Sequence record: NC_028829.1 | Length of the DNA: 64,000 bases | Reading direction: 5' to 3' (one strand) | In this document: positions 31,590 through 34,440 of the stretch, piece by piece | How the letters are laid out: each line of letters opens with the position of its first letter | Numbering within the stretch: the stretch's first letter is position 1 | The notes under the pieces: model-generated | What the model was told of the DNA's origin: nothing | Database searches by the model: none | Seen by the model: the letters and a program-made list of their open reading frames with translations, nothing else | Translations under genes and position numbers: made by a program

Positions 31590-32198
31590 TCACGAATGAA
31601 GCTCTTCATCGTACTGACTAGCAGCATATCGACCATCAATACGATAATCACCACAATCAGATACTAGTTCATCTGTATCAGAACCAACCGTAAACACTAC
31701 TAGTTTACCATACGTCTCAACAGCAATTTGTGTCGGACGTGATACAACAACTGTCGCGTCATGTGCATATGACGATGTACTATCGCTTGCGGCATAAATG
31801 TCTAGTATCTCACCGACAACTAGCTCGTGTTCTTCATCGACAAAATCAGTTTCTTTATACGCATATACAAGACGACCACTCTTCCACTTACAAGGGTACC
31901 AATCCCAATCTTTCGCTGACAACTTCAATCGAGCATGTACAAGTACCAACTGACCATCGTATTTTGTCTGTGTCTGCTTGTTACCATTTACTTTATCTTC
32001 TTCAACTGAGTAAAAAGCACCATTGTCAGATACTAGCATATAAGTCGGTTGCTCTATACCACGTATACCATCACCCGAGTCAAGGCAATTCAAATAACCA
32101 GACCATGTGTTGTAGTACGTCTCAACTCGTACCATACTACCGCTCGGCATAATCGCTTTCTTGTCTACTACTTTCTTATGTCTTTCAATTCGTTTCAT
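31590..32198 (-). CDS. hypothetical protein
   Basis: 202-aa ORF. Confidence 0.75.
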   Translation of the reverse strand: MKRIERHKKVVDKKAIMPSGSMVRVETYYNTWSGYLNCLDSGDGIRGIEQPTYMLVSDNGAFYSVEEDKVNGNKQTQTKYDGQLVLVHARLKLSAKDWDWYPCKWKSGRLVYAYKETDFVDEEHELVVGEILDIYAASDSTSSYAHDATVVVSRPTQIAVETYGKLVVFTVGSDTDELVSDCGDYRIDGRYAASQYDEELHS

Positions 32199-32208
32199 CT
32201 TATAACCC

Positions 32209-32517
32209 TTAGAAAAATTCTACATCACTGCAACGCTTGTAATCGTCTGCCGTTACTGGCACTCGTTCGTTCATATAGAACACACCGTTCTTACAACAAG
32301 CCCAATCTAATTGACCATACTTGTTCTCTTCTTGAACATACATATACACAGTACGACCACCGTCTTCGTTGATAGACATACCAATGTCTTTCTCCCATTT
32401 CTCACACGGAAATGATAGTAGAAAACGCGAACCTAACTGAACCCACGCCTCTTCTAAACTGGCAAACTCACCAGACCAACCACCACGCAACAAATTACCC
32501 AATCTGTACTTCTTCAT
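32209..32517 (-). CDS. hypothetical protein
   Basis: Intact ORF in operon. Confidence 0.75.
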   Translation of the reverse strand: MKKYRLGNLLRGGWSGEFASLEEAWVQLGSRFLLSFPCEKWEKDIGMSINEDGGRTVYMYVQEENKYGQLDWACCKNGVFYMNERVPVTADDYKRCSDVEFF

Positions 32518-32837
32518 ATCTTAACCTTATTAATGTTCTCTATAATGTATTTCAACCACGACTTACGCTCATATTCACGCAACTTACGATGTTCACAAGG
32601 CGGGTGATACGCACAGATAAAAGAATAACAATCTTCTAAATCATTCGGCAAATCACTCTGCCGTACGTACATACGCTGCAAATGCTTTAGTTTAAGCTTA
32701 ATCAAACTAACCATCTCGTCACTCACACCACGATGTAACTCTAAACAAGTATACACGCGATGCAACTCACCACAATTCAATAACTCTATAGCACGAGCAC
32801 GAACATGGCGATTCGCTCTGTAATTCTTAAACAACAT
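32514..32837 (-). CDS. paralog family member (YTC...RxxWL)
   Basis: VRARAIELL...YTCLEL...ERKSWLKYI; start moved to MLFKNY (TAATG overlap). Confidence 0.7.
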   Translation of the reverse strand: MLFKNYRANRHVRARAIELLNCGELHRVYTCLELHRGVSDEMVSLIKLKLKHLQRMYVRQSDLPNDLEDCYSFICAYHPPCEHRKLREYERKSWLKYIIENINKVKI

Positions 32838-32983
32838 TACCAATTCCCTGTGAACATCATTACACCACAGAACATCGTGGCGATTAATGCAAAGTCTAAA
32901 ATACATGTACCAAGGTACAAGTCACTTGGTCGCTCACTGTATTGCATGTCGCGACTCATATAAAATAACGCCAATGTAATCAC
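32837..32983 (-). CDS. small hydrophobic protein, 48 aa (not in ORF track)
   Basis: GGAGGT RBS, GTG start, stop overlaps next ATG. Confidence 0.6.
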   Translation of the reverse strand: MITLALFYMSRDMQYSERPSDLYLGTCILDFALIATMFCGVMMFTGNW

Positions 32984-33153
32984 AATTACCTCCGTAGGCA
33001 GTTCAAATCTCTTTGCATTCTCTCACATAATGCCGCTGGCTGTCAAGCAAGAAGATGCGAAGCGAATTAGATTTTCATAAATGGTGTAAGGTTTTAGACA
33101 GCCGCGTACCACACAGGAGCCGATGAGACTTTCACCAATTTTTCACTAAAAAG

Positions 33154-33262
33154 TTATCCACATTATCCACAGACTTATGCACAGTCAAATCATGTTTTTA
33201 TACACAGATTTCAGACACTTATGCACAATCTCATACACATATTATCCACAGACTTATGCACA
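33154..33262 (+). promoter_or_regulatory. cluster of co-oriented DnaA boxes (candidate replication origin or DnaA-titration site)
   Basis: TTATCCACA at 33154, 33163, 33242; TTATGCACA at 33175, 33219, 33254; TTATACACA at 33198; near-match TCATACACA at 33231; lies in ~360-bp noncoding gap. Confidence 0.8.
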
Positions 33263-33278
33263 TGTACATTTAAACGAG

Positions 33279-33320
33279 GCATGGTGCGATATATTAAAAA
33301 CAATACTATATGTACCATGC
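33279..33320. repeat. inverted repeat with AT-rich centre (candidate unwinding element)
   Basis: GCATGGT ... ATATATTAAAAACAATACTATATGT ... ACCATGC immediately downstream of the boxes. Confidence 0.6.
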
Positions 33321-33353
33321 TCTGAGACGCTGTGAGAGAGATTCTAAGCGTTT

Positions 33354-33470
33354 TTAGTCATCGTTTGATATATCGCTCAGGCACCATCCTGCTATTGCTG
33401 CTAGAGCACATAGAAGCAGCATGAGGTAGCCGATGGGTATATCGTTTAGTAGATTGATTAATGTTTGCAT
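33354..33470 (-). CDS. small membrane peptide, 38 aa (not in ORF track)
   Basis: MQTLINLLNDIPIGYLMLLLCALAAIAGW...; coupled to upstream stop. Confidence 0.55.
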   Translation of the reverse strand: MQTLINLLNDIPIGYLMLLLCALAAIAGWCLSDISNDD

Positions 33471-33471
33471 G

Positions 33472-33639
33472 TTACTTTAGACTGAAGCTCAATGTTAGAA
33501 TATCGATTAGGTAATACTGCATGATAGCATTAAAAGCAGTTGCTATTAGCAGAGCCACGAATGGAACTGTTCGTTTTGTTTTATCGGTTACGAACAGATA
33601 TACAGTGAGAATCAAGATTAAGATTGATAGTGCGAACAT
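33472..33639 (-). CDS. small membrane protein, 55 aa (not in ORF track)
   Basis: MFALSILILILTVYLF...; two hydrophobic segments. Confidence 0.6.
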   Translation of the reverse strand: MFALSILILILTVYLFVTDKTKRTVPFVALLIATAFNAIMQYYLIDILTLSFSLK

Positions 33640-33643
33640 GAGT

Positions 33644-33859
33644 TTACCCTACTATTAGATTAAAGCGTGCAGCGACATAGCTTGCTCGTTGGTTGTTGTC
33701 ATTAGTAATACGAATCATAGGTGGTTTGTTTGTATGTTCGTTTACGTTATACATGTGAACGACATATTCTTTGCCGAATGTCAAGCCGCTAGGTGGTTCT
33801 GGTTTGTCTATACGAGTTGAAGTATTGTCGATGCATATTGCTTTGATAGTTTGATTCAT
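33644..33859 (-). CDS. hypothetical protein
   Basis: LTFGKEYVV...ITNDN motif. Confidence 0.75.
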   Translation of the reverse strand: MNQTIKAICIDNTSTRIDKPEPPSGLTFGKEYVVHMYNVNEHTNKPPMIRITNDNNQRASYVAARFNLIVG

Positions 33860-34016
33860 ATTGCGCCTGCCGTTACGTTTAGTAGAACATATGAAACAAA
33901 GCCTAGAACAGCAGTGATTACTAGTTTCACGAAGCTAGGTTTGTTAATGAAGCTGAAGATACTCATGCCAGTTAGTATTGTACAGCATAGAAGTGTCATT
34001 AGTAGTATTGTCAAGC

Positions 34017-34190
34017 TCATAGTGTTACTCCGTATTTGTGAATCACAATCATGTTAGCTAGATTAACGACAGCGCATATGACAAGGAAGATACAGATGAA
34101 AGTTTTGTATTCTTTGCTCATGATGTTTTCAACTGAGTCGAACGTCAAGACTACAGTGAACACAAGTATAATAATAGATAGTCCGATCAT
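34017..34190 (-). CDS. small membrane protein
   Basis: AAGGA RBS; start moved to MIGLSI. Confidence 0.7.
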   Translation of the reverse strand: MIGLSIIILVFTVVLTFDSVENIMSKEYKTFICIFLVICAVVNLANMIVIHKYGVTL

Positions 34191-34200
34191 AATGTTTTCC

Positions 34201-34440
34201 TTACAGTTCAAAAACTTCATTTAGATGTAGAGCATTCTTTGCTGCTTCTACTACATTAGCAGATTGACTCATGATAACGCGCACTGAGTTTTGAATGCTC
34301 ATCATACGAGTTGTTGAGATTCTTCCGTATATGCCATATGCATTATTTTTAATCGTAATTTCTTGTTCTAATATTTCTATTGCATTACGCGCTGAGGTGC
34401 TTAGAGTTTCGTTCGCAGCTTTCTCGATGGTGTCAATCAT
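34201..34440 (-). CDS. hypothetical early protein
   Basis: First gene after cassette; AAGGA RBS. Confidence 0.75.
   Translation of the reverse strand: MIDTIEKAANETLSTSARNAIEILEQEITIKNNAYGIYGRISTTRMMSIQNSVRVIMSQSANVVEAAKNALHLNEVFEL

Follow-up and report, generated by a model that had tools for sequence, protein, structure and literature searches.

Phages of the T4 type are the standard textbook example of DNA replication that does without the host initiator. What, then, is a dense run of boxes for the initiator DnaA doing in the genome of such a phage? The phage in question is Vibrio phage ValKK3, a virulent, T4-like member of the KVP40-like genus Schizotequatrovirus with a genome of 248,088 bp. 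A sequence-only reading of a 64-kb window of this genome (64,000 nucleotides, the whole stretch of DNA that was analysed) had already taken the source to be a T4-like phage, and had proposed that the phage either hijacks host DnaA or titrates it at this locus.

A single cluster of DnaA boxes in ValKK3

The boxes lie in a 370-bp gap (32984-33353), the largest non-coding one in the window. The sequence-only reading had singled it out as such, and the region 32907-33471 is indeed the window's longest stretch without minus-strand ORFs of at least 50 aa. Its count of seven perfect boxes and one with a single mismatch proved exact when we re-read the sequence, as did the 22-mer ATTATCCACAGACTTATGCACA that it had found at both 33162 and 33241. 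The array is laid out as follows.

33154-33262 (109 bp), + strand: DnaA-box array, eight matches to TTWTNCACA
33154, + strand: box B1, perfect, TTATCCACA
33163, + strand: box B2, perfect, TTATCCACA
33175, + strand: box B3, perfect, TTATGCACA
33198, + strand: box B4, perfect, TTATACACA
33219, + strand: box B5, perfect, TTATGCACA
33231, + strand: box B6, one mismatch, TCATACACA
33242, + strand: box B7, perfect, TTATCCACA
33254, + strand: box B8, perfect, TTATGCACA

From B1 to B8 the start-to-start spacing is 9, 12, 23, 21, 12, 11 and 12 bp, with two sub-clusters (B1-B3 and B5-B8) at a fixed 9-12 bp. No site with up to one mismatch occurs on the minus strand of 33100-33330. Position 5 of the box is C, G or A, matching the degenerate site of TTATNCACA; no other box position varies freely, and this one is not read by DnaA.

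Across the 248,088 bp there are 35 boxes, against 27 expected from composition, and seven of them fall inside the 109 bp of the array. No two of the 28 boxes outside it come within 200 bp of each other anywhere in the genome, and the largest cluster in 200 shuffles contained two boxes. A Poisson estimate for the array is about 1e-13, and the shared strand of all eight sites has p = 0.008. The array is the only DnaA-box cluster in the genome and is far beyond chance.

We looked for a DnaA homologue in ValKK3 and found none (best tblastn match at E = 0.2), and a phage-encoded DnaA was rejected for this reason, leaving host DnaA as the only credible ligand; no Vibrio phage is among the phage DnaA matches listed. 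Binding of host DnaA to the array is a prediction from the boxes that we consider highly likely to hold. Each box would be bound by domain IV of the protein, and the tight head-to-tail spacing would bring adjacent AAA+ domains into contact, giving a filament of about eight protomers like those formed on datA or over the left half of oriC in E. coli. The sequence-only reading was not aware of such an array in this group, and we likewise found no published description of DnaA-box arrays in T4-like phages.

Conservation of the boxes and their surroundings

Conservation in related phages had been suggested as a check, and the outcome is favorable: the boxes are kept in VS1, QD01 and VS2 and in nt-1 and CZ01, and are absent from the KVP40 clade. 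Between ValKK3 and the divergent VS1/QD01/VS2 clade, 60 of the 64 specified box positions are identical compared to 21 of 37 spacer positions (p = 1.3e-5). Within that clade the array is identical throughout (108/108), whereas the flanks are 71-94% identical. The boxes of nt-1 and CZ01, which belong to a different genus (Mylasvirus), are in register and their spacing is unchanged. Judged from these substitution patterns, the boxes are held by purifying selection across two phage genera.

The KVP40 clade has no box at all and retains both conserved flanks and the length of the segment, which is 145-147 bp in all clades. Box positions are identical there at 25 of 64 sites and spacer positions at 22 of 37 (p = 0.06), and two to three CTTACC repeats stand where the boxes formerly stood. 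We searched this segment for a multi-copy repeat family and found none, which leaves the idea that new iterons replaced the boxes there unsupported.

The array is embedded among the following features.

31590-32837, - strand: ORF84-86, a cassette of atypical composition with G-rich third codon positions
32837-32983, - strand: 48-aa small ORF (phrog_16778) at the left border of the gap, the first gene after the promoter, conserved at the DNA level in all relatives
33017-33046, - strand: sigma-70-type early promoter, TTGACA-18-GAGAAT with TG upstream, -35 and -10 invariant in 12 relatives
33054-33076, no strand assigned: invariant non-coding block, GATGCGAAGCGrATTAGATTTTC (invariant columns)
33111-33127, no strand assigned: invariant non-coding block, ACACAGGAGCCGATGAG (invariant columns)
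33279-33320, + strand: conserved hairpin, the candidate DUE of the sequence-only reading, arms GCATGGTGC and GTACCATGC, loop 33288-33311
33328-33355, + strand: second small stem, CGCT...AGCG with an inner 3-bp stem, then TTTTT; pairs kept in 9-10 of 10 sequences
33354-33470, - strand: 38-aa hydrophobic ORF at the right border of the gap, replaced by an ORF of about 180 aa in phiGrn1, phi-pp2 and VS2

Given that the array sits between invariant non-coding blocks in a segment of fixed length, the alignment suggests a nucleoprotein complex of set geometry. QD01 is annotated with an ORF over the array; a coding role was rejected for this stretch, as for the left blocks, because the frame is not conserved and because, in ValKK3, a stop follows 8 codons after the ATG at 33123.

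The promoter remains recognisable in nt-1 and reads leftward into the 48-aa ORF and ORF86, with the array 108-245 bp upstream of it. A MotA-type middle promoter was rejected at this site, as the TGCTT motif beside the -35 element is not conserved. We found no late promoter (TATAAATA) near the gap, and within the gap no convincing + strand promoter and no intrinsic minus-strand terminator. The neighbors of the array are small proteins with no informative Pfam or PHROG matches and no DNA-binding domains that we could find; no replication genes lie near it, and ORF84-86 are not common to KVP40 at the DNA level.

In some respects the gap resembles the PeSL cassettes of nt-1 and KVP40, which are conserved intergenic units of the hyperplastic early region, each combining an early promoter with a stem-loop and surrounded by shuffled ORFan cassettes. 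PeSLs are compact, however, with an A3-4G3-loop-C3T3-4 stem beside TTGYVH-N17-TAWWAT, whereas the ValKK3 gap is 370 bp long and contains the box array. No PeSL stem occurs in 32984-33353, the promoter here is TTGACA-N18-GAGAAT, and the PeSL literature makes no mention of DnaA boxes.

Beyond these phages, a search of IMG/VR for further relatives returned KVP40 and VH7D only, and 14 matches to the array in a metagenome scan were unrelated and attributable to chance. The three-box module B1-B3 occurs in more than 120 bacterial genomes among the matches listed, mostly Clostridia and at a non-origin site; among these matches, the clostridial module lies within a hairpin that resembles a terminator, where a murC-like gene ends. 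Its recurrence in so many genomes among the matches listed points to a natural DnaA-binding arrangement. No host or plasmid source of the array was identified among the genome matches listed, a set that does not exclude Vibrio, and PLSDB gave two short Firmicutes matches only.

GC skew and the A+T-rich hairpin

Part of the case for a bidirectional origin had been a local switch in GC skew. The hand counts behind it (C:G of 40:14 and 18:27) are exact, and the step is real: no other in the 64-kb window is as large (+0.34, above 5 SD). The interpretation of its polarity, however, fails. Cumulative skew over the whole genome, which had been proposed as a check, has no inflection at 33 kb: it declines steadily over the first 134 kb and changes direction only at about 134, 187 and 223 kb, where gene orientation turns, with its extremes at about 187 and 223 kb. 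Third-position skew is +0.35 to +0.59 (G-rich) in the 1.4-kb island of ORF84-86 (31590-32983), whereas the genes further to its left and all genes to its right are C3-rich (-0.1 to -0.6). The step arises because the edge of this cassette, with its G-rich third codon positions, falls here; it is a cassette boundary in the hyperplastic region and not a sign of diverging leading strands. As skew otherwise follows transcription, replication-type GC skew at the array was rejected.

The AT-rich inverted repeat at 33279-33320 has arms (33279-33287 and 33312-33320) that enclose a 24-nt loop of 87% A+T, and the earlier remark on its polarity is correct: it stands to the boxes as the DUE stands to R1. 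Within the gap, stability is lowest in the 30-mer that starts at 33288, about 24-25 bp past B8, which ranks among the least stable 0.04% of the window. Polarity and instability agree with a candidate DUE, but the element is a short hairpin loop with an A+T patch of 24-26 nt. The gap contains no repeated 13-mers and no GATC sites, and we found no DnaA-trios (runs of at least three, either strand) in the four clades. Moreover, the KVP40 clade, which has no boxes, conserves the hairpin just as well, and the T-rich strand of the patch is flipped in QD01 and VS2, from which we infer that its conservation is independent of DnaA.

The hairpin folds better on the + strand (-20.8 kcal/mol) than on the - strand (-11.4 kcal/mol), and all of its substitutions are G-C to G.U exchanges on the + strand that break pairs on the - strand; the alignment contains no double compensatory changes. 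The second stem is terminator-like on the + strand only and was not flagged by a simple terminator scan. We rejected the entire gap as a single structured RNA, as two local hairpins are predicted and no covariation was seen. A search of Rfam with 32500-33800 returned no family and one sub-threshold chance match.

Possible roles of the array

The claim that the phage draws on host DnaA survives in part. Recruitment is supported by boxes that are genuine, unique, co-oriented and footprinted among relatives, and by the lack of a DnaA of the phage's own, whereas the support from skew is lost. The phage very probably recruits host DnaA, to judge from the sequence comparisons, and the array would be a selectively maintained landing platform for it within a conserved 370-bp cis-acting control region in the early, hyperplastic part of the genome. 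An origin-type function is a tentative assignment, less likely than not, and on the sequence evidence it appears to have about the same standing as a DnaA-decoy role.

The case for an origin starts from oriC, where co-oriented, close-packed boxes define the left-half DOR that abuts the DUE (PMC5742627). By analogy, the ValKK3 array looks like a half-oriC DnaA-oligomerisation region aimed at a short AT-rich hairpin loop. It shares with the left half of oriC in E. coli and Vibrio the co-oriented boxes, a distance of 11-12 bp from start to start, a high-affinity consensus box nearest the A+T-rich meltable element, and the R1-DUE polarity. It differs in that nearly all of its boxes are full consensus, whereas oriC has three strong boxes and many weak ones, and in the lack of 13-mers, ssDUE-type repeats, DnaA-trios, a GATC cluster, an oppositely oriented right half and a conserved IHF site; an IHF-like site at 33188, between B3 and B4 (AATCATGTTTTTA, one mismatch to WATCAANNNNTTR), is confined to the ValKK3 clade and not conserved in the VS1 and nt-1 clades. 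Unlike oriC, too, the array is not beside replication genes and shows no skew inflection, and its A+T patch of about 25 nt is conserved independently of the boxes.

The function that we tentatively prefer is that of an origin, with a filament whose polarity points toward the A+T-rich hairpin loop as R1 points toward the DUE. Such a filament would destabilise the loop or mark it as an accessory early initiation site, where the phage loader and helicase (gp59/gp41, Dda) or host DnaB could enter. The array would then be one among several redundant T4-type origins, dispensable enough to be lost in the KVP40 clade, and not a genome-organising origin defined by skew. T4 itself has several origins that are individually dispensable; one of them, oriE, contains direct repeats at regular intervals and requires an early promoter (PMC3016281). 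Like the ValKK3 array, oriE is a non-genic cis element of the same phage family whose direct repeats are evenly spaced and close to an early promoter of the sigma-70 type. Its 12-nt repeats (GTTGAAGGTAAT) have a 24-nt period, however, and lie inside gene 5 near repEA/repEB, with no box cluster. Homology of the array to these repeats was rejected, since GTTGAAGGTAAT is dissimilar to the boxes and the genomic context is another.

The remaining T4 origins are further removed. T4-type phages have a complete replisome, published T4 origin mechanisms do without DnaA, and oriF and oriG use middle promoters and R-loops (PMC3016281). The sole supported promoter in ValKK3, in contrast to the MotA-box promoter of an R-loop origin, which supplies the transcript for an R-loop in an unwinding element downstream, is of the sigma-70 type, 108 bp off and pointing away from the array. 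That DnaA opens or marks an early origin in Schizotequatrovirus and Mylasvirus (minus the KVP40 clade) and phage helicase-loading machinery then takes over would be a hybrid of oriC- and T4-type initiation undescribed in the family; we hold this somewhat doubtful. The KVP40 clade thrives without any box, which speaks against an origin.

Alternatively, the array could work as datA does, titrating host DnaA and possibly promoting DnaA-ATP hydrolysis, so that multiplying phage genomes drain active DnaA, block host initiation and shift DnaA-regulated host transcription. Taken by itself this seems rather doubtful. Like datA and the box clusters of Bacillus and Streptomyces, the array consists of non-coding, co-oriented consensus boxes outside the chromosomal origin, and the number of copies present would be important; in datA, too, the essential boxes share one orientation, and additional copies of the locus inhibit both initiation and growth (PMC5742627). 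Seven of its eight sites are full-consensus boxes of the high-affinity type, DUE-specific motifs are absent, and the surroundings are small early genes in the hyperplastic host-adaptation region (PMC4122927); being accessory, such a function could be lost by one clade. But the array packs eight boxes into 109 bp, whereas the datA-type clusters have four to five in 262 bp to 1 kb; no conserved IHF site lies between its boxes, whereas datA has a single one at an optimised distance; and its carrier is a virulent phage. A simple sponge would need neither strict co-orientation, nor spacing fixed across genera, nor invariant flanking blocks. As one incoming genome brings just eight sites, any effect would be delayed to the final part of a short lytic cycle, with no evident gain for a T4-like phage that has its own replisome. 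With no minus-strand site (up to one mismatch) in 33100-33330, the array does not fit the definition of DARS either (PMC5742627).

The closest precedent is the eight-box cluster of T5-like phages, which bears on a decoy and also on a tether. The T5-like iss cluster has about eight boxes, in pairs 3 bp apart, away from mapped origins (bioRxiv 10.1101/866236). Its carrier, too, is virulent and has a replisome of its own, and the cluster occupies a large non-coding region amid the first genes of host takeover; it is conserved in relatives and has an unproven function. Its position in pre-early DNA, away from origins, favors a decoy. ValKK3 has three such pairs (B2-B3, B5-B6 and B7-B8, each 3 bp apart) among its eight sites. 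The T5 boxes, half of which deviate from the consensus, form two inverted-repeat sets (IRC/IRD) with 52-bp spacers over about 3 kb of the fixed terminal repeat (first-step-transfer DNA), whereas those of ValKK3 are all direct, within 109 bp and nearly all consensus. That membrane-associated DnaA anchors the phage chromosome, as in the injection-stop proposal for T5, or that the gap is a packaging or end-generating site with DnaA as an accessory, appears quite improbable. The paired boxes are consistent with it, and database records from three independent sources, for box-bearing and box-less phages alike, are cut within 270 bp of the gap, with record ends inside its left part at 33057/58 and 33087/88. 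An end-generating site is also favored by a PhageTerm call of 'headful (pac)' for one KVP40-like phage (PMC13373721). Yet these records are seamless permutations whose cut points may be arbitrary or due to curation, and published accounts of PVA23, PVA8 and pA3B5 give no reason for them. The genome of that KVP40-like phage is reported as headful-packaged and circularly permuted (PMC13373721), whereas the T5 boxes lie in inverted repeats of a fixed terminal repeat. The anchoring model for T5 is itself only a proposal, and the terminase genes are 128 kb off.

The position of the array between two transcription units, in a gap that has no intrinsic minus-strand terminator, raises another alternative: a barrier (roadblock or insulator) that separates the upstream minus-strand operon from the 33046->33017 promoter, or a gate on a + strand transcript ending at the hairpin and T-run, either of which could couple early expression to host DnaA status. 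The conserved promoter 108 bp downstream in the minus sense, the right-flank hairpins with their better + strand folds and the T-run that follows, and the terminator-like setting of the clostridial module among the matches listed all agree with such an element. Still, eight boxes far exceed the usage at known DnaA-regulated promoters, the + strand has no convincing promoter, an RNA is unproven by compensatory covariation (none was seen), and the KVP40 clade retains promoter and hairpins without boxes. We regard a transcriptional role as unlikely. Least probable, and in our estimation very unlikely, is that the boxes are iterons for a phage-encoded protein other than DnaA whose specificity resembles the DnaA box and which was changed or lost in the KVP40 clade. 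Box positions in that clade have changed more than the spacers and CTTACC repeats took their place, as iterons would allow, but the match to TTATNCACA is exact down to the degenerate position 5, the KVP40 segment has no multi-copy repeat family, bacteria use the same three-box module, and there is no candidate protein, the neighbors being without DNA-binding domains.

An array of the DnaA-binding type under purifying selection in two genera implies that T4-like vibriophages interact somehow with the master switch of host replication. If the array is an origin, it would represent a new mode of initiation for the family and a defined cis element for engineering phages relevant to aquaculture. 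If it is a decoy, it would be a natural trap for DnaA in compact form and a new strategy of host takeover, and the unexplained eight-box cluster of T5-like phages would become easier to understand. With a naturally box-less KVP40 clade and phages that grow on the laboratory host V. natriegens, the question is directly testable.

The box array and its setting

The window is 100% identical to positions 1-64000 of KP671755.1, the 248,088-bp genome of ValKK3, one of the KVP40-like "schizo-T4" phages (Straboviridae, Schizotequatrovirus). The array lies among small early genes of the minus strand with no assigned function, and this region is part of the hyperplastic region of nt-1/KVP40-type genomes, which takes up their first ~60 kb (PMC4122927). 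The sequence-only reading had called the gap that holds the array the largest noncoding one in the window, and it is indeed the longest stretch there without a minus-strand ORF of at least 50 aa. A motif scan confirmed seven perfect boxes and one 1-mismatch box in 109 bp, all on the + strand (B1-B8 from left to right). The repeated 22-mer, the hand counts of C:G and the inverted repeat spanning 33279-33320 also proved exact.

Features of the gap
32984-33353: the non-coding gap, between a 48-aa ORF (32837-32983) and a 38-aa ORF (33354-33470)
33046->33017, - strand: predicted sigma-70-type promoter (TTGACA-18-GAGAAT), invariant across relatives and recognisable in nt-1, pointing away from the array
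33054-33076 and 33111-33127: two invariant blocks of no recognisable function
33154, 33163, 33175, 33198, 33219, 33242 and 33254, + strand: seven perfect TTWTNCACA sites
33231, + strand: 1-mismatch box, TCATACACA
33279-33320, + strand: hairpin, right of the array
33328-33355, + strand: small stem followed by TTTTT, right of the array

Genome-wide there are 35 TTWTNCACA boxes against 27 expected; the 28 outside the array match the expectation, and none of these lies within 200 bp of another. Shuffled sequence gave at most 2 boxes per 109 bp (Poisson estimate ~1e-13). Start-to-start distances from B1 to B8 are 9, 12, 23, 21, 12, 11 and 12. B1-B3 thus form a triplet, B4 stands alone and B5-B8 make a quartet; in three pairs of neighbours the boxes are separated by exactly 3 bp.

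Five very small, hydrophobic, membrane-peptide-like ORFs (38-67 aa) run along the minus strand at 33354-34220. In phiGrn1 (L006:1455-2000), phi-pp2 (L010:1321-1860) and VS2, an ORF of ~180 aa directly right of the gap's T-run takes the place of the ValKK3 38-aa ORF; no Pfam domain in it passed the threshold. The site, next to a conserved non-coding region, is an indel hot spot.

Conservation and loss of the boxes

We aligned the gap from 13 relatives and added nt-1 and CZ01 afterwards. The array is almost invariant among the 7 phages of the ValKK3 clade. Between ValKK3 and the VS1/QD01/VS2 clade, whose flanks are 71-75% identical to those of ValKK3, 60/64 specified box positions are identical compared with 21/37 spacer positions (Fisher p=1.3e-5), and variation within the boxes falls on position 5 (C/G/A), which is N in TTATNCACA. 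Among VS1, QD01 and VS2 themselves, the array is identical at 108/108 positions while the flanks are 71-94% identical. Because nt-1 and CZ01, of another genus (Mylasvirus), keep its location and spacing (9, 12, 23, 21, .., 12), the array is ancestral. Judged from these alignments, the boxes are under selection: they are kept across two genera while the spacers diverge. A + strand CDS annotated over the array in QD01 (QD01_174, L011:1073-1378) is probably an artefact, since its frame is not conserved in relatives and the same ATG in ValKK3 opens only 8 codons.

The KVP40 clade (KVP40, phi-pp2, TCU-VP03, PVA8) has no site within 1 mismatch of the consensus in the homologous segment, which is 146-147 bp long compared with 145 bp and has recognisably homologous spacers. 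Former box positions there have diverged further than spacers (25/64 vs 22/37 identical, p=0.06), and no multi-copy repeat was found in this segment as a replacement. As read from the alignment, the boxes were completely lost in this clade, a derived state, with all their surroundings retained. The box-less segment (L002:2853-2922 in KVP40, L010:1152-1221 in phi-pp2) carries, at former box positions, 2-3 copies of CTTACC and an inverted repeat of 11 nt (AAAATCGTGTA / TACACGGTTTT, with 48 nt between them). The flanking elements are equally conserved without the boxes, which suggests that the gap has a DnaA-independent core role to which the array is an added module.

To the right of the array, the hairpins (33279-33355) fold well only on the + strand (-20.8 vs -11.4 kcal/mol on the minus strand), antisense to every neighbouring gene. 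Their substitutions are all G-C<->G.U on the + strand and pair-breaking on the minus strand; there are no double compensatory changes. A small + strand RNA might have its 3' end here. We found no convincing + strand promoter and no Rfam family in the gap region, and the gap as a single conserved RNA was rejected since it does not fold as one.

Host DnaA as the predicted ligand

ValKK3 has no DnaA-like protein of its own (tblastn, best E=0.2), and no Vibrio phage with a DnaA homologue was among the phage matches listed. Two 'Campylobacter phage' records, MG065686.1 and MG065691.1, contain a full-length dnaA with 99.8% identity to that of E. coli K-12; host DNA, through contamination or mis-assembly, is the probable explanation. 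In its sequence requirements, down to the degenerate position, the array matches DnaA. Vibrio oriC works in E. coli, so box specificity is common to both. Host DnaA is thus predicted with considerable confidence to bind the array, and its recruitment, proposed earlier, is well supported.

More than 120 bacterial genomes among the matches listed share the B1-B3 layout (a box, a second one abutting it, 3 bp, a third box), which argues that it is a natural DnaA-binding module. The exact module, TTATCCACNTWATCCACANNNTTATNCACA, was found chiefly in Lachnospiraceae, Blautia and Anaerostipes (L160-L279, the matches listed), mostly directly after the end of a murC-like gene in a hairpin resembling a terminator (ATCCACAGGG...CCCTGTGGAT, with a T-run), and near dnaA in only 3/110 of these loci. 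It is therefore not origin-specific; in Clostridia these loci look like a conserved DnaA-box cluster outside the origin.

Origin, decoy and other readings

The skew polarity had been taken as the sign of a bidirectional origin, and this we refute. Cumulative GC skew falls steadily over 0-134 kb and turns at about 134, 187 and 223 kb, where gene orientation turns; across the whole genome there is no inflection at 33 kb. Diverging leading strands would leave a skew persisting for tens of kilobases. In phiGrn1/phiSt2, skew follows transcription and a "putative origin" was assigned to another location (PMC5107563). The local step at 33.25 kb is real and, at +0.34, larger than any other in the window. 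Immediately on its left, ORF84-86 (31590-32837) are G-rich at third positions (+0.35 to +0.59); the genes at 30.1-31.4 kb are C3-rich (-0.18 to -0.40), as are 14/14 genes on its right (mean -0.34). The step is thus the edge of a shuffled cassette, and the positive + strand skew on the right arises partly because the five small hydrophobic ORFs have a C3-rich, G-poor coding strand. ORF84-86 have no DNA-level match in KVP40, and ORF85 has none in Va3/phiST2. The 1.4-kb island at 31590-32983 (GC3 skew +0.35 to +0.59 vs -0.1 to -0.6 in neighbours) is absent or different in KVP40, Va3 and phiST2, and resembles a cassette that is foreign in composition and was shuffled recently.

We tentatively regard the array as a possible accessory origin-like initiation site, a reading ranked first, narrowly, because of the conserved geometry and the embedding of the array in a multi-part cis element. 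Its co-oriented, close-packed boxes resemble the DnaA-oligomerisation region of the oriC left half (PMC5742627), and its fixed length between invariant blocks suggests a complex of defined geometry. The AT-rich element proposed as a DUE does lie on the correct side, with the polarity of DUE to R1, and is very unstable: the least stable 30-mer in the gap (33288, hairpin loop; top 0.04% of the window) begins 25 bp past B8. However, evidence for a DUE is weak. 13-mers, DnaA-trios, GATC and a conserved IHF site were not found, and the A+T patch is short, conserved independently of the boxes and strand-flipped in QD01/VS2. Replication genes are also absent nearby, T4 origins use RNA polymerase and R-loops rather than DnaA (PMC3016281), and the T4 oriE repeats (GTTGAAGGTAAT, inside gene 5) are unrelated.

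A datA-like decoy is only slightly less probable: box orientation is compatible with datA, but the ValKK3 array is denser and lacks a conserved IHF site. With no box in the opposite orientation, the array cannot be a DARS. We consider a transcriptional roadblock or regulator improbable. Non-DnaA iterons are the least probable reading.

A tether or DNA-end-related role seems slightly more doubtful than the roadblock. Three independent sources supplied database records or contigs that start or end inside the gap, within 270 bp (L003, L139, L140, L280 and L281 are the record ends).

Record ends near the gap
33057/58: cut of the R10Z/R11Z records
33087/88: cut of PVA23 and, at the homologous base, of box-less PVA8/PC-Liy1
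~33322: end of the partial contig TCU_VP02_YC

These cuts could reflect a pac/DNA-end site, a coverage anomaly or curation. The complete records cut here are seamless circular permutations, and the PhageTerm call reported for one KVP40-like phage is "headful (pac)". The nearest phage precedent for the array is the T5-like injection-stop region, a large non-coding stretch of pre-early DNA with about eight DnaA boxes, paired at a distance of 3 bp, and of hypothetical function (bioRxiv 10.1101/866236); its boxes, unlike those of ValKK3, are part of inverted repeats in a fixed terminal repeat. The gap does not match a canonical PeSL.

We found no published description of the array in the literature on DnaA boxes and KVP40, T4-like or virulent phages, nor does the nt-1 genome paper refer to it. 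The system lends itself unusually well to testing: box-less relatives exist naturally, and V. natriegens is a host for several members.
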